This document shows positions 42,175 to 57,010 of a stretch of DNA of 64,000 bases, piece by piece. The DNA lies in the sequence record NC_023568.1; one strand, 5' to 3'. A model generated the notes under the pieces. It ran no database searches. It worked only from the letters and a program-made list of their open reading frames with translations, and was not told the DNA's origin. Position 1 is the stretch's first letter, and each line of letters starts with the position of its first letter. Made by a program: the position numbers and the translations under genes.

Positions 42175-43611
42175 TTAAAAGCTGTAGCGTTCGACGCCTA
42201 CAGTTTTCATCATGATCTTGATTGGCTCAAGCTCACCACCCAACAGTGAAGTCAAGATAGATGGGCTACAACCAGATACCAGTGCAGTACCCGCTTCACC
42301 AGCTTTAACCGGAACGTTGCCAAGACGACCACGAATGTTCCAGAAGACCAGTTGTGGCATTTCATAACCAGCACGTGCGTACATGGCTTTGATTGCATCG
42401 AAGTTCGCAGGTTCACCGCGACCGTACCAGCCACCGCCAGTGTTTGCTTGATCGAATTCCATGTCACTCATGATAAGCAACTTGGTTGGCATATCTTCTT
42501 GTGAAAGATTTGCACGCTTCGCACGCTCTAGCAGAACATCAAAGCACTTACCGATGTTCGTACTCATGTCTTCGCCTGAACGATTCATGTTATCAAGACG
42601 CTCTTTCAATGAGCTACCGCGCAACTGGTGGAAGTGCGGGTCGCTTGAGAACGAAATGAATTGATCTTTGAAGATGCCTTCATTGCGTTCAGCAACATAA
42701 ATCCCAAGAGACATTGCAACTTGCTTACAAGTCACACCTGAATGGTCTGTACCTGCGTTGATTGGCGTGCTCATAGAGCCAGACACGTCAACAACAGGGA
42801 TGATGCGCTCATCAGAACCTTCCATGTAGTTTGGCAGAGCTTTCCATTGCTCGTTCGCTACAGACGCATTACCGTGACTAACGCTCTTAACGACATCGTA
42901 TGGGAACAATGCGCCAGCGTTGATCTTCGCTTCACCTTTTTGAAGTGACTCGATGTAGCTTGTGTAACGAGCTGAAGCGTTACGACCGAATGCTTGTTGA
43001 TAACGAGCAGACGCTACAGAAGGCAATTTACCGAAGTCGATTGCATCCCATTCCTGAGCACACATTTTCTGTTCAACAGTGTCAGACAGAAGAGAAAGAA
43101 TCTTACGCCACTGCTTCGCAGTTACACCAAGAGACTTGATTGTGCGCTTGAATACGTGACCGTTTTTGCTGTTCTCGCGTGGGAACCACTTCGCAGCAAG
43201 ACCGTTCTTGTCGTTTACAATCGCGTTTGACCACATAGTGATCGCGTCTTTTTCTAGACTTGTGCCGAAAGCAGAAATCAAGTCATCGAAACGACCTAGT
43301 TCTGGAATTTTCGACATTACAGCACGAGCTACGTCAGGCTGCTCATTACAAAGTTTAGCGAAAATAGTACGGAAAGTACCACGTTCACCCGCACCACCGC
43401 GAACGTCACGAGACCATAGCAAGATGCGTGTCGCAAGTTCTGGGTTTTCTGCAAACGCACGACCGAACAGTGTTTTAGACTGATCGTTGCCACGCATAGC
43501 AGCAATACCGAAGAACAAGTTTAGACACTCGTTACCTGAAGTGCTGTGAGTAACTGCACCGTTTACTGTGCGTGAATCGTTTGTTTGCATTGCGTTCATA
43601 AATACTGACAT
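42175..43611 (-). CDS. Ro60-like TROVE/vWA protein (DUF2828 type)
   Basis: RDVRGGAGER, AAKWFPRE helical region; MIDAS VVDVSGSM, MSDMEFD, LVFWN. Confidence 0.8.
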   Translation of the reverse strand: MSVFMNAMQTNDSRTVNGAVTHSTSGNECLNLFFGIAAMRGNDQSKTLFGRAFAENPELATRILLWSRDVRGGAGERGTFRTIFAKLCNEQPDVARAVMSKIPELGRFDDLISAFGTSLEKDAITMWSNAIVNDKNGLAAKWFPRENSKNGHVFKRTIKSLGVTAKQWRKILSLLSDTVEQKMCAQEWDAIDFGKLPSVASARYQQAFGRNASARYTSYIESLQKGEAKINAGALFPYDVVKSVSHGNASVANEQWKALPNYMEGSDERIIPVVDVSGSMSTPINAGTDHSGVTCKQVAMSLGIYVAERNEGIFKDQFISFSSDPHFHQLRGSSLKERLDNMNRSGEDMSTNIGKCFDVLLERAKRANLSQEDMPTKLLIMSDMEFDQANTGGGWYGRGEPANFDAIKAMYARAGYEMPQLVFWNIRGRLGNVPVKAGEAGTALVSGCSPSILTSLLGGELEPIKIMMKTVGVERYSF

Positions 43612-43690
43612 TGTTCATTTCCTCATAATTAATTGCTGTAAAATGTCTTTGATGAAGTGATTATACGCGAATTTTAATGCGTGTAAACAC
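43607..43690 (-). promoter_or_regulatory. early promoter plus leader carrying the AG-N8-CAGCA module that pairs with the start codon
   Basis: GTTTAC-17-TATAAT; GACATT (43642-43647) complementary to AATGTC (43607-43612). Confidence 0.75.
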
Positions 43691-44346: not shown

Positions 44347-44708
44347 AGATATTCCTTAATTGGTTTTGAAAAATGTCGAATGCATGAACTATCGAGACGC
44401 AGACGACCATCACCGTCAATATCTGGTAGCGTGTACCCATCATTGAATGGTTGACCGCTTTCTTTCGCGAGTTCATAAGCATCAGCGCGATTGAAGTATT
44501 CACCACAATAATTGATGAATCCCTGCCCACGATCACCAAGTTCGCTTCGATGTTCATATGTACAGCCAAGTTCTTTCAATAGCTTAAACACGCCTTGCAT
44601 GTTTCGACCAAAATGGCAGCTATCTGCAACAACAATATCCCTCTCTTCGCCATTTGGTAAAGTGACTCTAATTGCATTTGCAGCAGCAGAAATTACGTTT
44701 AAGTGCAT
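44343..44708 (-). CDS. conserved phage hypothetical protein
   Basis: QGFI...G.YF.R..AY.LA..SGQ motif. Confidence 0.7.
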   Translation of the reverse strand: MHLNVISAAANAIRVTLPNGEERDIVVADSCHFGRNMQGVFKLLKELGCTYEHRSELGDRGQGFINYCGEYFNRADAYELAKESGQPFNDGYTLPDIDGDGRLRLDSSCIRHFSKPIKEYL

Positions 44709-45046
44709 GTATCTTGCCTCATAAAGATAGAACCCACACGTTTATATTGAAGTGTGTTCATCAACATCATAGTCATCTTAGAGTGAGCAACAGGGTTACT
44801 CGTTACTAGAACAACTGTGCGTGGGAAGTTACGATGATCAATTGCATGAGAGAGAATATCATATCCCTCATGACCAAGAGCACCGCCTAGATCATTGTCC
44901 ATGAATAAAGTAATATCTGTAAGATTCGTATGTTTGACGAATTTCATACCGTCTTCATACGTACGCAAAACAAGCTTCTGATCTGCGGAAATTTCAGGCG
45001 CAGTGAACTTATCGATATCACGCATATCATCAATCATTACAAACAT
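44699..45046 (-). CDS. cyclic-phosphate-processing receiver domain protein
   Basis: IDDMR, FMDNDLG, GYDIL, TSNP motifs. Confidence 0.6.
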   Translation of the reverse strand: MFVMIDDMRDIDKFTAPEISADQKLVLRTYEDGMKFVKHTNLTDITLFMDNDLGGALGHEGYDILSHAIDHRNFPRTVVLVTSNPVAHSKMTMMLMNTLQYKRVGSIFMRQDTCT

Positions 45047-46712: not shown

Positions 46713-48428
46713 ATGAGTTCTATTAATTTACCTGGCGGAGGACAACCTCTACCAAAATACGTCGAAGAAGCGCCTGTAAATGGGTTACTATACGGTCGTA
46801 AAGATGAAGCATGGGAGCCAATCCCTGAAGATTCACTAACACCGTTTCCATTAGGAACGACACCTAATTCATTCGATGCAGAGACTGGCGACAGAGCCGC
46901 AGCAATCGCTCTAAGAGACGCTTATGCATCAGCAAACCCGTCATGGGTTGCGTTTTATGTAAACAACCCGACATCTGCGATTGACCTTGTATATGAAGAC
47001 ATTTCTGTTGGCGGGACAGTTGCTGAAAGACAAACGTATACAGGAACACAATGGATTTCACAGCGTATTGTTGAAGGGATACCCGGGCCAATCGGGCCAT
47101 CAGGTGAAGGGTCAATCCCTCCATTCGCGTCGATTGCTGAACGCGATTCTTTCTTCGCGTCATCAGGGAATAAATCACTATTGAAAAAAGGATTACCTGT
47201 ATTCGTTCAGGAATTTGAAGGTCGAGCAAGCTCATATTATTGGAGAGGCGAGACAAACCCAAATACGTACGATGCTTCTAAGTTCTCACTAGCCGCAGTT
47301 CAATCAGGGAACGGTGATTTATACTTAGCAAATGCGCATAAGATATCTTCGTCAGGTCAGAATATAGCAATAACCAATATTATCGACAACGTGAGCTTTC
47401 ACCCCGTATGGCAGACATACGAAGAAGGGAATACTGCAACGGTACGTGTGCGTTCCATCGAGTCTGTTACTGAATATTCTGACAAATCAGGGCAACTAAC
47501 CAACCCACGATGGGAACTCGCGCAGATGGCAAACAATCGCACGCTATACTCAGTCATGGTTGATTTTGTCAATGCATACGATGAAATTGATGTTGTCGTT
47601 TATAAAAACACAGATGAATATTACCAAACTAAAATATTCGATATTACACCGGGCGAAGTTGATGTATTAATCGAACCACCGTTTGACATTCGTTCAATGG
47701 ACGTGCTTGAGCTTGAGTTGCGCAACCCGAACTTAGATGTTGTAGTATGGGGTAACTTATCAACAGGAATCCCATGGAATAAACCAACAACACGTGATTT
47801 TACCGATGAGACTGTTGTGATTCAACCTGATTTATATGCAGTCGAAACAAGAGTAAGTGACATCGAAGCAAACGCGATTGTCACTGGGGATAATGTTTCT
47901 GAACTGACAAATGACGCGGGATATATTAGCGACAAAGACATCATTTTCCAGAAGAGCAATAATACTGGAACTAACGTGTTAACGCTAAACGGGACAGGTG
48001 AGGAGGGTACTATCCCACTATCGCAAACCGATGAAAATGGTGTGTTATTCGAATACTCGTCAACTACTGATAATTTCAGACCACTTGAAGATAAACCAAT
48101 GCACATTAAACTTAGAATAAGTATTGATCGTTCTGGCGGAGGGTCAAACCCCGAGATCATAACGTGGGTTGAATCAGCAGCGACGGACACAACAGTTCCT
48201 AATGCATTTACACAAGAAACATCAGCATTTCGAATGGTTGATCTGCAAACAGACCGTACATTATTTTTAATCGATACGATTTTAAATATGGACTCAAGTC
48301 GTTATTATCGCATAAGACTTCGTAATTTAAACGGCGACGATTTTGATGTTGATACATTCGGTCCGTTTACAACAAGTTCGGGTAATGATATTTTTGCACC
48401 CGCAGTTGAGTTTATGCTTAGTCGATAA
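46713..48428 (+). CDS. probable trimeric virion appendage protein with N-terminal foldon-like motif
   Basis: KYVEEAPVNGLLYGRKDEAW; GIPGPIGPSG triplets; VSELTNDAGY motif. Confidence 0.6.
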   Translation: MSSINLPGGGQPLPKYVEEAPVNGLLYGRKDEAWEPIPEDSLTPFPLGTTPNSFDAETGDRAAAIALRDAYASANPSWVAFYVNNPTSAIDLVYEDISVGGTVAERQTYTGTQWISQRIVEGIPGPIGPSGEGSIPPFASIAERDSFFASSGNKSLLKKGLPVFVQEFEGRASSYYWRGETNPNTYDASKFSLAAVQSGNGDLYLANAHKISSSGQNIAITNIIDNVSFHPVWQTYEEGNTATVRVRSIESVTEYSDKSGQLTNPRWELAQMANNRTLYSVMVDFVNAYDEIDVVVYKNTDEYYQTKIFDITPGEVDVLIEPPFDIRSMDVLELELRNPNLDVVVWGNLSTGIPWNKPTTRDFTDETVVIQPDLYAVETRVSDIEANAIVTGDNVSELTNDAGYISDKDIIFQKSNNTGTNVLTLNGTGEEGTIPLSQTDENGVLFEYSSTTDNFRPLEDKPMHIKLRISIDRSGGGSNPEIITWVESAATDTTVPNAFTQETSAFRMVDLQTDRTLFLIDTILNMDSSRYYRIRLRNLNGDDFDVDTFGPFTTSSGNDIFAPAVEFMLSR

Positions 48429-48463: not shown

Positions 48464-48488
48464 AAAAAAACCTGCTCAAGGCAGGTTT
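48464..48488 (-). terminator. terminator ending the tRNA/ncRNA operon
   Basis: AAACCTGC cttga GCAGGTTT + T run on - strand; convergent + strand terminator 48427-48451. Confidence 0.8.
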
Positions 48489-48503
48489 AGATGTGCAATA
48501 CAC

Positions 48504-48748
48504 AGACATTCGAGAAGTGTTTTATCGTCTTTCCTTAAATCTCATTTGACTATAACGATGTTTCTCATCGGAAAAATACTCATGATTCGGCATGAGTCCT
48601 ATTTCGTTTGACAGTACGAACACCGTCTTAATGGTCATTTCCTACCACGAGAATGCGACAGGCTCACGTCATCACTGAGAAAGCAGCTAGTGCGCCTCAT
48701 TACTATTAAAGTTTGCTTTGATTTTGTAATGATTGCTGTACAATGTCT
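48504..48748 (-). ncRNA. 245-nt structured RNA closed by the AG-N8-CAGCA module (Y-RNA-like, long type)
   Basis: AGACATT/AATGTCT terminal helix, about six internal hairpins, 3' motif shared with 50505-50733. Confidence 0.75.
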
Positions 48749-48759
48749 TATTGCGAATT

Positions 48760-48848
48760 TGGCGGAAGCACTGGGAATCGAACCCAGAGAACGCTATTAA
48801 CGTCCGACACCTTAGCAGGGTGCTGTCATACCTTTAGACCATGCTTCC
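48760..48848 (-). tRNA. tRNA-Ser(GCT)
   Basis: cloverleaf, loop CTGCTAA, long variable arm, CCA. Confidence 0.93.
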
Positions 48849-48887
48849 AACGTCTCATCAATTAATGGCATGCTGCTCTCATGCTCA

Positions 48888-48921
48888 GACACATATTTGC
48901 TCTTATTGCTGACGTGTGCCA
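48888..48921 (-). ncRNA. minimal copy of the helix-CAGCA module
   Basis: TGGCACA-CGT-CAGCAAT...TGTGTC. Confidence 0.5.
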
Positions 48922-49016
48922 CGCGCTTCGCAGATCCACTTTAGATAATTTAAAGACCTAGCGGGACTCTTAGCAGGTCTATCCACTCTCTTTCGATTCG
49001 CGTTGCTAAGTGAATT

Positions 49017-49093
49017 TGGTGCCCAACCCGAGATTCGAACTCGGAACTCCTAGTGTTTGAAACTAGTGCCTCTGCCAATTGGACTAGTTGGGC
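49017..49093 (-). tRNA. tRNA-Leu(CAA)
   Basis: loop TTCAAAC, short variable region, CCA. Confidence 0.9.
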
Positions 49094-49104
49094 TTGAATA
49101 AACT

Positions 49105-49196
49105 GCCGCGACTCTTTAATCCCTAACACCTGTCAGCTTTCGCTCGGCTGAGACCGTTTTTCAACGGCGGTAGTCTAGCTTCGTATAGAACGCGGC
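49105..49196 (-). ncRNA. structured RNA with GAAA tetraloops
   Basis: GCCGCG/CGCGGC closing stem; CCGTT-GAAA-AACGG; TCAGC/GCTGA. Confidence 0.55.
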
Positions 49197-49209
49197 TTAT
49201 GCTAGAATT

Positions 49210-49286
49210 TGGTACGCACGGGCGGATTCGAACCGCCATCCCTGAGATTTTAAGCCTCATGCCTCTGCCAATTGGACCACGTGCGC
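49210..49286 (-). tRNA. tRNA-Leu(TAA)
   Basis: loop CTTAAAA, CCA. Confidence 0.92.
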
Positions 49287-49288
49287 AT

Positions 49289-49362
49289 TGGAGCTCGAAC
49301 AGGGAATCGAACCCTGACCTGCGGATTTGCAATCCGTCATACTTCCATTATACGATTCGAGC
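49289..49362 (-). tRNA. tRNA-Cys(GCA)
   Basis: loop TTGCAAA, U73, CCA. Confidence 0.92.
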
Positions 49363-49374
49363 ATAAATGTACTT

Positions 49375-49451
49375 TGGGGTGACAGACGGGGATCGAACCC
49401 GCATCTTCCGGAATCACAACCCGGGGGTATTTCCACTTCACCCACTGCCAC
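49375..49451 (-). tRNA. tRNA-His(GTG)
   Basis: loop TTGTGAT, C73, CCA; -1 base is T. Confidence 0.9.
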
Positions 49452-49577
49452 ACCAAAGTACACTTAAAAGTTTGCATTATGTCTTGGAGAAATAGATAAA
49501 TCTACTAGCAACACCGCCGTCGCTACCTGCAATACTTTGGGATGTTTACGACATCAAACGAATGCACTTCCTGTGCA

Positions 49578-49829
49578 TTAATCAGATTTATTTAAGTAGA
49601 TTCTATCAGGCGATAGTTCTCTTGTAAACATATTTCTGAAATAAATTTCGATATCTGCTTCAGTTGTTGAAGACTCAATTTCAAGAGCACGCTCAAGAAC
49701 ACGCTCAAGAATCTTGTTACGCTTAAACCCAGCGCGCCAACAGTCAAACATAAGTCTGTCCATTTGATTTAGCTTTTCGATTTGATTCGGGTTTACGTAT
49801 TCATGAGTTTCAAGTAATACAGGCGTCAT
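49578..49829 (-). CDS. hypothetical protein within tRNA cluster
   Basis: GAG RBS; ORF track. Confidence 0.7.
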   Translation of the reverse strand: MTPVLLETHEYVNPNQIEKLNQMDRLMFDCWRAGFKRNKILERVLERALEIESSTTEADIEIYFRNMFTRELSPDRIYLNKSD

Positions 49830-49852
49830 AATTTATTTCTCATCATAAAGAA

Positions 49853-49926
49853 TGGTAGTCCCTAGTGGAATCGAGCCACTTCTTTCTCTGTGTAAAAGAG
49901 ACGTACTTCCATTATACTAAGGGACC
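49853..49926 (-). tRNA. tRNA-Val(TAC)
   Basis: loop TTTACAC, T-loop CTCGATT, CCA. Confidence 0.9.
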
Positions 49927-49932
49927 AAAATT

Positions 49933-50006
49933 TGGAGCGGGTACACGGACTCGAACCGAGACGAACGACTTGGAAGGACGTCATGCTACCATTACATCAT
50001 ACCCGC
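49933..50006 (-). tRNA. tRNA-Gly(TCC)
   Basis: loop CTTCCAA, U73, CCA. Confidence 0.92.
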
Positions 50007-50195
50007 ATTGTTAATCTGAAGCGTCGAACAAATCACGTATTGCACGTAGATTCGTAAGCTCTACAGTAAGTGTTCTTATAAAGAACGGGTTGGTCTCATT
50101 CGCGAGACATTTTTCAACATATCGAATTTTATCGCGTATGTTGCCCTTGCTTAGTGTAAAGTAGTCATGCTTCGTAACCTCTTTGTTTTTGAATT

Positions 50196-50271
50196 TGGAG
50201 GTGACACCGATACTCGAAATCGGATCTTACGCCGTATGAAAGCGTTGCTCTGCCACTTGAGCTACATCACC
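50196..50271 (-). tRNA. tRNA with CAT anticodon (Met or Ile2)
   Basis: loop TTCATAC, CCA; identity ambiguous. Confidence 0.8.
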
Positions 50272-50273
50272 AA

Positions 50274-50500
50274 TTGCAGTAATTAACTCATTTAATCGCA
50301 CACTGGCTGACACCATATATTCATGGTCTGAGTGAGGAACCACATAGTGGGTACTGTTACCTCTGCTTAGTTTTGATTGTTTTACATGACGATGACTAGA
50401 AACGTTCATAATAATGCCACGCGATACATCCTATATCGCTGCTAACATCTAAGTTAGCGTATCTTGCCTTTCGGCTACAGTGTCGTTTCCGACGAATTAA
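50274..50500 (-). ncRNA. about 225-nt multi-hairpin RNA
   Basis: GTCG-GAAA-CGAC, GCC-GAAA-GGC, GCTAAC/GTTAGC, ACACTG/CAGTGT helices; ends TTACTGCAA. Confidence 0.55.
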
Positions 50501-50504
50501 GTAC

Positions 50505-50733
50505 AGACAATACCGAAGTGTTTTTTTCGTCTTTTGCATAAATCGGAGTTGACTAGCTTATTGATTCTCAACAAGCAAATATCGTCTGTTTCAGCGACGC
50601 GCCTATCTGACTATTTCTAGACAGAGAGAATCTTTCCTTTCAAGCTGCGCCTAAGCAAGCTCAGGTTAAAATCAGCCCAGGTTAAGATCATCACTTCTTT
50701 TAAGTAATTTCAATTGTTTGCTGTATATTGTCT
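50505..50733 (-). ncRNA. 229-nt structured RNA closed by the AG-N8-CAGCA module (Y-RNA-like, long type)
   Basis: AGACAATA/TATTGTCT terminal helix; AAAGACGA...AAAACACTTC 3' motif. Confidence 0.75.
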
Positions 50734-50796: not shown

Positions 50797-50872
50797 TGGC
50801 ACGCCGTATGAGATTCGAACTCATAACCCCATCCTTAGAAGGGACGTGCTCTTCCAATTGAGCTAACAGCGC
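50797..50872 (-). tRNA. tRNA-Arg(TCT)
   Basis: loop CTTCTAA, CCA. Confidence 0.92.
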
Positions 50873-51338: not shown

Positions 51339-51344
51339 GTTACT

Positions 51345-51457
51345 GAGTGTTATTACTAGCGTCGTCCAGACCAGTGATACCAACACTGAAAGGGAATCGA
51401 ACCCTAAACATTTCTTTCCGATAAGAATATTAGTAAATTGTTTGCTGAAAACACTCT
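51345..51457 (-). ncRNA. YrlA-like circularly permuted tRNA mimic with the module
   Basis: GAGTGTT/AACACTC end helix; order T arm (TTCGATT), capped acceptor-like stem, GG-containing D-like loop. Confidence 0.75.
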
Positions 51458-51792: not shown

Positions 51793-51850
51793 AGTAATCC
51801 TTTTTGCTTTTTCCAAATAAAAGTTTTGTATTGTTTGCTGTAAGATTACT
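51793..51850 (-). ncRNA. 58-nt end-closed RNA with the module
   Basis: AGTAATC/GATTACT helix then TTA-CAGCAAA. Confidence 0.7.
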
Positions 51851-52265: not shown

Positions 52266-52352
52266 AGCTTGCGTTCTTTGGTCTGTTTATCGCTGTCTGA
52301 ACTGAGTTCGTCGAGCGATCAATAGAGTAAGTTAAATTGCAGTATGCAAGCT
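52266..52352 (-). ncRNA. 87-nt end-closed RNA with the module
   Basis: AGCTTGC/GCAAGCT helix then ATA-CTGCAAT; internal ATCGCT/AGCGAT stem. Confidence 0.72.
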
Positions 52353-52990: not shown

Positions 52991-53009
52991 ATTAAATTTT
53001 GTAAACTTC

Positions 53010-53138
53010 TTTTCTTCATTGTACATGATGTTTATATCGTTGTAAACATCTTTTTTGAAAAACTTTTCATTCGATTTTGAATGATAATTCGCTTTTCTTC
53101 ATTGTACATGATGTTTATATCGTTGTAAACATCTTTTT
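53010..53138 (-). promoter_or_regulatory. tandem identical 46-bp promoters for tRNA genes
   Basis: 53010-53055 = 53093-53138; TTTACA-17-TACAAT with internal GATGTTTA/TAAACATC inverted repeat. Confidence 0.8.
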
Positions 53139-54221: not shown

Positions 54222-54337
54222 TGGTAGTCGGGGCTGGATTCGAACCAGCGACCACGTGCTTAACAGGCAATTGAAGGAGTGCTGGAGCGATACTTGTCAG
54301 TATCATTCTTCGTGCTCTACCACTGAGCTACCCGACT
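54222..54337 (-). ncRNA. tRNA body (Asn-like loop retained) with the module inserted in the anticodon arm
   Basis: AGTCGGG/CCCGACT, D and T arms, ACCA; insert GATACT-GACA-AGTATC-GCTC-CAGCA. Confidence 0.8.
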
Positions 54338-54864: not shown

Positions 54865-54877
54865 TATAATTTCCTCT

Positions 54878-54974
54878 TGGCGCCGCTCGTGTGAATCGAA
54901 CACACGTCAAACACAACACCTCTTCAACCCAATTAGAGTTTCGAAGTAAGAGCTAATCAGCATTTCAGAGCAGC
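54878..54974 (-). ncRNA. tRNA-like RNA with CCA and non-canonical D/anticodon region
   Basis: GCTGCTC/GAGCGGC acceptor, GTGTG-TTCGATT-CACAC T arm, GCCA end. Confidence 0.65.
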
Positions 54975-55121
54975 CGAGCGTTATTTCTACATACAAGACT
55001 TCGACATCTCACATGCACTTTCTACTCGGTCCCAGTGATTCGGTACCAACGTAGGTTGCGAACCTACGTCTGCACTAATGTTGGGAATACACTGTGTATT
55101 GTACGCCAGTTAGCGGCATTT

Positions 55122-55352
55122 TTAAAGATAGCTGTCAAAAACATCATCACTGACTTCTTCAATCTTGATGTCAGCGTAACATTCGTTCGCAACTGCTCGA
55201 ATTTCATCTATTGAAACTGTACCCGAGTACAAAACAACAGAGTCGTTCGGAATCACAACATCACACATGTATCTGTCAAACATTTCAGTTCTGAAATCGT
55301 AATCGACGTAGCAAGCGTGCATTGATGTGATAACTAGCAATTTATGTGACAT
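55122..55352 (-). CDS. hypothetical early protein
   Basis: TTGACA-17-TAGTAT promoter at about 55383-55411; GAGG RBS. Confidence 0.7.
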   Translation of the reverse strand: MSHKLLVITSMHACYVDYDFRTEMFDRYMCDVVIPNDSVVLYSGTVSIDEIRAVANECYADIKIEEVSDDVFDSYL

Positions 55353-55893: not shown

Positions 55894-56017
55894 TGGTGGA
55901 GAGTACGGGATTTGAACCACGTGACAAAAAGATTTACCTAGTTATTAAGGTTGCAGCATGAATGCTTGTCAGTATTCTTTAACATTCTTTTGCTCTACCA
56001 GACTGAGCTAACTCTCC
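55894..56017 (-). ncRNA. tRNA body with the module replacing the anticodon loop
   Basis: GGAGAGT/ACTCTCC, ACCA; GAATACT-GACA-AGCATTC-ATG-CTGCAA. Confidence 0.8.
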
Positions 56018-56024
56018 AGAATTT

Positions 56025-56140
56025 GAAGGTGAAGTGCAGGACTCGAACCTGCGACCTCCGGCGTGCATGTGAATGCAGAATGAAATCTTATCAGACTTCG
56101 TTTTTTGGCCGGCGTTCTAACCTACTGAACTAACTTCACC
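56025..56140 (-). ncRNA. Asp-like tRNA body with the module replacing the anticodon loop
   Basis: GGTGAAGT/ACTTCACC, CCGGC/GCCGG stem; GAAGTCT-GATA-AGATTTC-ATT-CTGCA; no CCA. Confidence 0.78.
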
Positions 56141-56150
56141 AATGTAAAAA

Positions 56151-56287
56151 CATATTGAGCAGGGTGCAGGATTCGAACCTGCGTCACGATCTTGGAAATG
56201 ATATGCTAAATTGATTGCAGAATACAAACTTAACAGCTTGCGTTTATGCTACGTGTGCTAGCCACTACACCAACCCTGCTCAATATG
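56151..56287 (-). ncRNA. Gly-like tRNA body with the module, inside a 15-bp terminal stem
   Basis: GCAAGCT-GTTA-AGTTTGT-ATT-CTGCAA; residual TTTCCAA; T arm GCAGG-TTCGAAT-CCTGC. Confidence 0.78.
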
Positions 56288-56528: not shown

Positions 56529-56675
56529 GAGAGTACATTGGTCGAGTGTAACGGAATCGAACCGTTCCCACGATCTCCCTATGATATGCGTAAATTGGTT
56601 GCTGAATATAATCATGTCTGATTACAGTATGCTACGTGTGCTGCCACTACACCAACACTCGACCAATGTACTCTC
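56529..56675 (-). ncRNA. tRNA body with the module, inside a 21-bp terminal stem
   Basis: CGAGTGT/ACACTCG + ACCA; TGTAATCA-GACA-TGATTAT-ATT-CAGCAA; paralogue of 56151-56287. Confidence 0.8.
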
Positions 56676-56760: not shown

Positions 56761-56864
56761 CTCATCTTCAGAGAAGAGGCAGAAACGATGAGTTTAGTCT
56801 GCTTAATCAATATTGTTCATCTTCAATAAGAGGCGAGAACGATGAACTTAGCTCGCTTAATCAA
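56761..56864 (-). repeat. two tandem H-type pseudoknot units (55-nt period)
   Basis: five compensatory base-pair changes between copies. Confidence 0.8.
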
Positions 56865-56872
56865 CTGTGTTA

Positions 56873-56993
56873 ATCTTAACATCATTTCAGTGTAAGTCAA
56901 CAACTTTTTTCAAATATTTCATCGAGTTGAAAGTTTGTGTTCTGTCTCTCGACTCGATGAAATACATTCTACATGCTTTTCAGAATAAGTCAA
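56873..56993 (-). promoter_or_regulatory. two early-type promoters heading the tRNA/ncRNA operon
   Basis: AAAGTTGTTGACT...TG.TAAGAT and AAAGTTGTTGACT...TG.TAGAAT; 13-bp leader hairpin between them. Confidence 0.75.
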
Positions 56994-57010
56994 CAACTTT
57001 TTGAAAGTTT

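Follow-up and report, generated by a model that had tools for sequence, protein, structure and literature searches.

The stretch of DNA analysed here, 64,000 nucleotides (nt) of sequence record NC_023568.1 and referred to below as the window, comes from the KVP40-like, T4-type Vibrio phage VH7D, with which it is identical in sequence. Between 48.7 and 56.1 kb it carries 27 tRNA genes (called by ARAGORN), all on the minus strand, and two longer elements in the same orientation: element 1, which begins 11 nt past tRNA-Ser (48760-48848), and element 2, which begins 63 nt past tRNA-Arg (50797-50872). An earlier note, made from the letters of the sequence, had described them as two RNAs of ~230-245 nt closed by an AGACA-type helix, and we confirm both, at the same boundaries and on the minus strand. 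Elements 1 and 2 are real, conserved, structured and paralogous non-coding RNAs, and the module formed by their ends characterises an RNA family that is widespread in phages and whose members are encoded next to Ro60-like protein genes or at a distance of a few kb. In VH7D the Ro-like gene lies on the same strand, with element 1 4.9 kb and element 2 6.9 kb upstream of it. An intrinsic-terminator-like hairpin with a T run stands 3' of element 1, which is therefore the final gene of the tRNA operon.

The ends of both RNAs pair in a helix, P1, and share the exact 5' sequence AGACA-N-U-N-UACAGCAA. P1 differs between the two elements by a compensatory change (the closing helix of element 2 reads AGACAAU(A):(U)AUUGUCU) and varies again in orthologues, with AGGCAAU/AUUGCCU in phage F86 and AGAUAAU/AUUAUCU in phage 1.081.O. 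One nucleotide off the P1 3' strand stands a second helix, P2, of 4 base pairs (bp), which encloses a conserved A-rich loop of 24-26 nt and covaries as well: GAGA/UCUC in element 1, CCGA/UCGG in element 2, and GUGA/UCAC and GCGA/UCGC in relatives. In the model-fitted alignment described below, P2 of element 1 (helix 9) is 100% paired and two of its four pairs covary. The loop holds the 3' motif AAAGACGA(U/AA)AAAACACUUC, present in both elements, and window-wide the exact 3' 10-mer AAAACACTTC (AAAACACUUC) is confined to elements 1 and 2. This motif had been described as single-stranded sequence just before the 3' helix strand; it is found there in both RNAs, but as the loop of P2 and not as a free single strand. 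A D-stem-like GUC:GAC pairing around the motif was considered and rejected, the pairing being lost in the variants of loci L032 and L043. The folds contain the five or six hairpins per RNA that had been proposed, including the two quoted as examples. The further proposal that the hairpins of the two RNAs are unrelated does not hold for at least the two that stand 5' of the conserved UAGUCAA, which occupy homologous positions in both RNAs and, in the model-fitted alignment, covary between the paralogues.

Looking for structural conservation in relatives, we found both elements, with compensatory changes, in ~50 related Vibrio phage records, nt-1, VH1_2019 and QD01 among them, and their syntenic positions are fixed in all KVP40-like phages. 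In the best of these records the elements have no gene annotated across them; a few records place hypothetical proteins there. Orthologues were taken from 12 phages, including the distant nt-1 and CZ01 (70% identity in element 1) and, farther still, D482, F86 and 1.081.O. Compared with column shuffles, the consensus folding energy has a z of -4.7 for element 2, where 0 of 200 shuffles are as good, and of -3.0 for element 1, where 2 of 200 are. R2, a covariance model that derives from element 2 alone, matches every element-1 orthologue over its full length with E values of 1e-15 to 1e-20, and the two elements are therefore paralogues. In an alignment of 28 sequences fitted to the model, 95.7% of cells pair and double changes occur at 33 of 45 pairs, giving a covariation score of 0.296 against 0.105 in shuffled alignments (0/500) and no more than 0.046 once the pairing partners are slid. 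The picture drawn in the earlier note, of long, structured, scaffold-type non-coding RNAs in which a conserved terminal module and a second, 3' motif surround variable hairpins, thus stands.

The 478-amino-acid (aa) protein encoded downstream is, by its predicted TROVE plus vWA fold, a divergent Ro60-like protein, and PHROGs labels it an RNA-binding protein. Its AlphaFold model, built with 24 homologues, has a pLDDT of 77. In a Foldseek search the best full-length matches to this model are Ro60 entries, namely those of Xenopus Ro (1yvr, 2i91 and 1yvp; E value 7e-8, TM score 0.54-0.58) and, in the same range, those of the Ro60 of Thermus phage phiLo (9kop and 9l5y), with isolated vWA domains ranking far below Ro60. 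The DVSGS MIDAS motif is invariant in the family alignment. A profile search of the protein against PDB sequences reached TROVE chains only at E = 2. The family of Ro-like proteins is large, with 7,383 of the 8,000 candidates scored having E <= 1e-5.

The module that closes elements 1 and 2 consists of the 7-bp P1 followed directly by unpaired N-U-N-C-A-GCAA; we defined it as N1-G2-N3..7, N-U-N-C-A-G-C-A-A, a downstream complement of positions 2-7, and then N-G. Six modules lie in the window, all on the minus strand (Table 1): those of three sibling RNAs of 87, 58 and 114 nt, each 5-12 nt from the adjoining tRNAs, then those of element 2 and element 1, and last one in the leader of the Ro-like gene. 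Further loci comprised 79 from IMG/VR, with Ro-like homologues at 46-55% identity, and 21 more distant ones from genome assemblies. A pattern-plus-pairing scan of 1.43 Mb gave 207 sense matches, 11 antisense and 7 in shuffled sequence, and yields 180 unique module instances with 56 distinct P1 helices, in RNAs of three size classes (42-70, 71-160 and >160 nt). R1, a covariance model of the short class, produced 87 matches at E <= 0.01 in a set of 100 loci of Ro-like relatives, every one on the gene strand, and 0 matches in 526 kb of unrelated viral contigs. These negative-control contigs are the chance-match loci from an IMG/VR scan for the 3' motif, in which only VH7D and KVP40 were real among 58 loci. 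Across 72 distinct R1 matches P1 is 99.2% paired and all seven of its pairs covary, with a score of 0.867 against 0.193 for shuffled alignments.

The module lies on the gene strand in 70 of the 79 viral loci and, in 60 of the 79, falls between -600 and +900 nt relative to the gene; an adjacent module is also found in 11 of the 21 more distant loci. In most related loci the module RNAs stand directly 3' of the Ro-like gene and tRNA genes are absent nearby, the commonest layout being the Ro-like gene, a hairpin of ~57 nt, an RNA of ~235-260 nt and a terminator. No conserved protein neighbour of the Ro-like gene was found across the loci. Because the flanking proteins vary by locus, the module RNA is the sole constant neighbour of this gene. 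Three distant loci (L052 3133-3380, L075 1410-1634 and L083 9675-9940) have two or three tandem module RNAs directly upstream of the Ro-like gene. In one of these RNAs a T arm, an acceptor-like hairpin and a D arm follow each other as they do in YrlA; the final RNA of the row overlaps the ribosome-binding site.

The third exact copy of the 5' motif (43648-43633) stands outside the tRNA array, in the 5' leader of the 478-aa gene, and the arrangement of this leader is kept in KVP40, nt-1, F86 and 1.081.O. In distant leaders (L046, L056, L062, L067 and L083) the module is found just 5' of the ribosome-binding site with compensatory changes in P1, the variants including AGAAUUA/UAAUUCU and AGAUUUA/UAAAUCU. 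D482 and CZ01 have, in place of the module-bearing leader, a GIY-YIG homing endonuclease gene inserted immediately upstream of the Ro-like gene (L003 15685-16275; L004 9425-10018). Autoregulatory leaders in which the mRNA imitates the chief RNA ligand of a protein are familiar from ribosomal protein operons and from T4 RegA and gp32. The leader of the Ro-like gene resembles them in repeating the module of the free RNAs so that it overlaps the ribosome-binding site and start codon, and differs from them in that its regulation is something we infer from sequence alone. To our knowledge, neither a module-type copy in the leader of Ro60 itself nor a feedback loop of this kind has been described for Ro60.

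The second motif, near the 3' end, marks the long RNAs. Its form AAGAY-K-N1-2-AAA is carried by 23 of the 25 KVP40-like long RNAs and, among the remaining long RNAs, by 20 of 57; the background rate is 1.6%, and no short or mid-size module RNA has it. In the non-KVP40 long RNAs it reads GCCGAAGAC (20-26 of the 57), and in 26 of them, against a background of 7%, it fits GNCGAAN0-1G, the motif of YrlA RNAs, in the 3' region. The earlier note had also supposed that the 3' motif might base-pair with a target, an idea that found no backing in the window, where an antisense search gave nothing beyond chance.

Ro60 and Y RNAs occur in organisms that range from animals to bacteria, and their role in phages has barely been explored. 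In bacteria and some phages, YrlA RNAs with a GNCGAAN0-1G motif adjoin Ro60 genes (Chen et al. 2014, PMC4201824); a ROT/TROVE protein with a tRNA-like partner occurs in a subset of jumbo phages (Iyer et al. 2021, PMC7824862); and phiLo Ro60 binds two phage-encoded Y-like RNAs, Yrl1 and Yrl2, and complexes with host PNPase (PMC12135203). We found no paper on DUF2828-linked RNAs or on the module RNA family. Like Y RNAs, YrlA (RF02553) and the phiLo Yrl RNAs, the module RNAs are non-coding, lie near a Ro60-type gene (within 1 kb in 60 of the 79 viral loci) and often number at least two per genome. As in Y and YrlA RNAs, their paired ends form a stem with the presumed protein site around a variable interior, the stem covarying and being only 7-8 bp long, and they occur amid tRNA and RNA-repair genes. 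Some also enclose T and D arms, and a tRNA-like domain is seen in the sibling at 51344-51457 and in L052, L075 and L083. Unlike Y and YrlA RNAs, they conserve a 7-bp helix plus UNCAGCAA, not a bulged helix with GNCGAAN0-1G, and the protein to which they are linked belongs to the divergent DUF2828 family, not to Pfam TROVE. Elements 1 and 2 differ further in their length of 229-245 nt, against 80-130 nt, and contain no recognisable tRNA-like domain (T arm, acceptor-like stem and D arm). Rfam searches of the window and 13 related loci, at gathering and permissive thresholds, returned tRNA, tmRNA and weak YrlA matches only; one weak YrlA match is a known false positive spanning two adjacent tRNAs. 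No module RNA matches an Rfam family at threshold, and the family is absent from Rfam 15. For the T-arm-bearing module RNA of L052, the match to YrlA is full-length but weak, scoring 20 bits (E 0.12) where the gathering score is 69.

Table 1. Features of the two elements, their sibling RNAs and the Ro-like gene in the window.
Feature	Position	Strand	Details
Element 1	48504..48748	-	245-nt module RNA; R2 match 48499-48752, E 9.6e-18
Element 1 P1 5' strand, AGACAUU	48742..48748	-	helix 1 of model-fitted alignment
Element 1 5' motif, GUACAGCAA	48733..48741	-	conserved, unpaired
Element 1 conserved UAGUCAA	48546..48552	-	just 5' of P2
Element 1 P2 hairpin	48512..48543	-	GAGA (48540-48543) pairs with UCUC (48512-48515); 24-nt loop with 3' motif
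Element 1 P1 3' strand, AAUGUCU, then GU	48504..48510	-	
Intrinsic-terminator-like hairpin and T run	48468..48488	-	~16 nt past element 1
Element 2	50505..50733	-	229-nt module RNA; R2 match E 4.5e-59
Element 2 P1 5' strand, AGACAAU	50727..50733	-	
Element 2 5' motif, AUACAGCAA	50718..50726	-	
Element 2 conserved UAGUCAA	50549..50555	-	
Element 2 P2 hairpin	50513..50546	-	CCGA (50543-50546) pairs with UCGG (50513-50516); 26-nt loop with 3' motif
Element 2 P1 3' strand, AUUGUCU, then GU	50505..50511	-	
Sibling module RNA, 87 nt	52266..52352	-	between tRNA-Tyr and tRNA-Met; R1 E 0.011
Sibling short module hairpin, 58 nt	51793..51850	-	between tRNA-Trp and tRNA-Asn; R1 E 3.7e-11
Sibling module RNA, 114 nt	51344..51457	-	between tRNA-Gln and tRNA-Thr; canonical T arm and D-arm-like hairpin inside
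Leader module copy	43606..43648	-	ribosome-binding site GAGGA in loop; start codon inside P1 3' strand AAUGUCA; R1 E 3.6e-4
Early-promoter-like GTTTACA, 17-nt spacer, TATAAT	43660..43688	-	ahead of leader; read from sequence
478-aa Ro60-like protein gene	42175..43611	-	predicted HEAT-repeat ring and vWA, DVSGS MIDAS; DUF2828 and DUF7788, PHROG 850

An RNase H-like gene (PF04308; 41601-42131, minus strand) lies directly 3' of the Ro-like gene, and upstream of it is a gene for a cyclic-phosphate-processing receiver (cREC; 44699-45046, minus strand). These neighbours suggest an RNA-repair setting; neither is conserved in distant loci. A plus-strand open reading frame (ORF) of 571 aa (46713-48428; PHROG 20050, without a Pfam match) separates element 1 from the minus-strand genes downstream; VH7D, ValKK3 and VH1_2019 have it, and KVP40 lacks it at that place.

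The tRNA region has several further features. Early-promoter-like sites near 57000, 56905 and 55410 on the minus strand (AAAAAGTTGTTGAC, 17-nt spacer, TAnnAT) feed the tRNA array. Positions 56774-56877 contain two similar repeats of 50 nt, and an exact 47-nt direct repeat occurs at 53009-53055 and 53092-53138, the copies 83 nt apart. Three minus-strand tRNA genes (56028-56139, 55897-56017 and 54225-54337) have intact acceptor, D and T arms and an insert of 44-54 nt in place of the anticodon loop; ARAGORN makes no call for them, and their orthologues are tRNA-Pseudo-3, -4 and -5 in the KVP40 record. By eye, acceptor, D and T arms are also seen in two tRNA-like paralogues of 126 nt (56156-56281 and 56539-56664, minus strand), whose large insert contains UUC(A/U)GCAA-N-CAAUUUA, reminiscent of the module 5' motif; neither the Rfam tRNA model (E <= 0.01) nor R1 matches them. 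A 247-nt RNA (54876-55122, minus strand), with its 5' GCCGCU paired to a 3' AGCGGC ahead of GCCA and with an adjoining T arm, resembles the tRNA-like domain of the tmRNA type (fold z = -2.7) and has no ARAGORN or Rfam call. True tmRNAs lie near modules in the related loci L060 and L090.

Through its link to Ro60-like genes across many phages, the module points to a specific first partner of elements 1 and 2. We favour, with moderate confidence, the reading that the two are Y-RNA-like scaffold RNAs of the divergent phage Ro protein, whose level would be under feedback control through the leader copy. The elements would be co-transcribed with the phage tRNA array and excised by tRNA end-processing. 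Binding of the module by the Ro-like protein would then let the two long RNAs act as scaffolds in the manner of Y RNAs, with a further binding surface formed by their variable hairpins together with the second motif, the conserved A-rich loop of P2. This surface could anchor an effector, for example an exoribonuclease of the host or a factor that repairs RNA or handles tRNA; alternatively it could act as a gate to the ring. The leader copy of the module, as a mimic of the RNA partner, may give the Ro-like protein feedback control over its own translation.

Several points weigh against this reading. Its basis is association in the genome and similarity of fold, the link to the protein being guilt by association, and Pfam assigns only DUF2828 and DUF7788 to the protein, not TROVE itself. 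Elements 1 and 2 do not stand beside the Ro-like gene but 4.9 and 6.9 kb away, are roughly twice as long as the Y RNAs known so far and lack a clear tRNA-like domain, and the Rfam YrlA and Y_RNA models leave them unmatched even at E <= 10. The covariation counts come from alignments fitted to models, which biases them toward structure. The YrlA motif GNCGAAN0-1G fits none of the 25 KVP40-like long RNAs, elements 1 and 2 included; in relatives this canonical motif overlaps the second motif, so that the protein contact could be the second motif and not the module.

An explanation that we consider unlikely is that the elements are stable by-products or spacers of tRNA-operon processing, with the module serving as a processing or stability signal for a host or phage RNase or chaperone and having no tie to the Ro-like protein. 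The model here is species 1 and 2 of T4 (rnaC and rnaD), stable small RNAs of unknown function that are released by tRNA processing and lie at the distal end of a T4-type tRNA cluster, the terminal position that element 1 holds in VH7D. The five non-leader modules of the window do occupy gaps between tRNAs, the distance to the tRNA ends being 5-12 nt (11 and 63 nt past the tRNA for elements 1 and 2), and the RNase H-like gene lies 3' of the Ro-like gene. However, the latter neighbour varies across loci, the tRNA-free surroundings of most related module RNAs, directly 3' of the Ro-like gene, do not fit a by-product of tRNA processing, and nor does the copy in that gene's own leader. Unlike the elements, rnaC and rnaD are 119-139 nt long and have no module or sequence similarity to them, and R1, applied to the tRNA region of T4, detected no module (best E 0.68). 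It is also rather improbable, in our estimate, that the Ro-like protein binds through the second motif as a degenerate relative of GNCGAA(N)G, leaving P1 and GCAA to be read by another factor or merely to hold or protect the ends. The confinement of the second motif to the long class and the fit of its GCCGAAGAC form to the YrlA motif, well above background, would agree with this, but the canonical motif is missing from all KVP40-like copies, and the gene-adjacent short hairpins and the leader copy carry the module only, which is hard to explain unless the module is the protein's site.

The terminal inverted repeats of 7-8 bp, and the homing endonucleases in the tRNA regions of relatives, might instead point to small mobile DNA or to homing-endonuclease remnants, and the ORFs of 38-68 aa that overlap the elements, where a few records annotate hypothetical proteins, to small coding genes. 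We reject both because of strand bias and covariation, regarding the former as very improbable and the latter as scarcely credible. Mobile DNA would not be expected to show a strand bias of 87 to 0, pairing that is kept as the sequence changes through 56 distinct helices, covarying internal helices and fixed syntenic positions in all KVP40-like phages. The ORFs, which the earlier note had already held not to explain the elements, are unconserved, with 1-nt indels among close relatives, and conservation tracks base pairing and not codons.

Returning to the reading of elements 1 and 2 as scaffolds of the phage Ro protein, a wider and more tentative picture is that of a widespread phage ribonucleoprotein system in which a DUF2828 Ro60-like ring works with its own family of GCAA-module RNAs in three sizes, namely hairpins of ~57 nt, tRNA-like RNAs of ~110 nt and scaffolds of ~230-260 nt. 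Possibly such a system controls its own translation through the leader, tethers a host exoribonuclease or RNA-repair factor through the second motif of the long scaffolds, and polices, repairs or shields the large tRNA pool of the phage during infection, for example against host anticodon nucleases. The signature in sequence and structure described here is a simple means to pick out candidate RNA partners of Ro-like proteins in a large branch that is still uncharacterised, and a single phage with six copies of it, one of them in the protein's own leader, offers a testable feedback loop. Module RNAs explain the conserved unannotated gaps in KVP40-type tRNA arrays and would tie these gaps to the quality control or repair of RNA, and so touch on the ways in which large phages may defend their translation apparatus.

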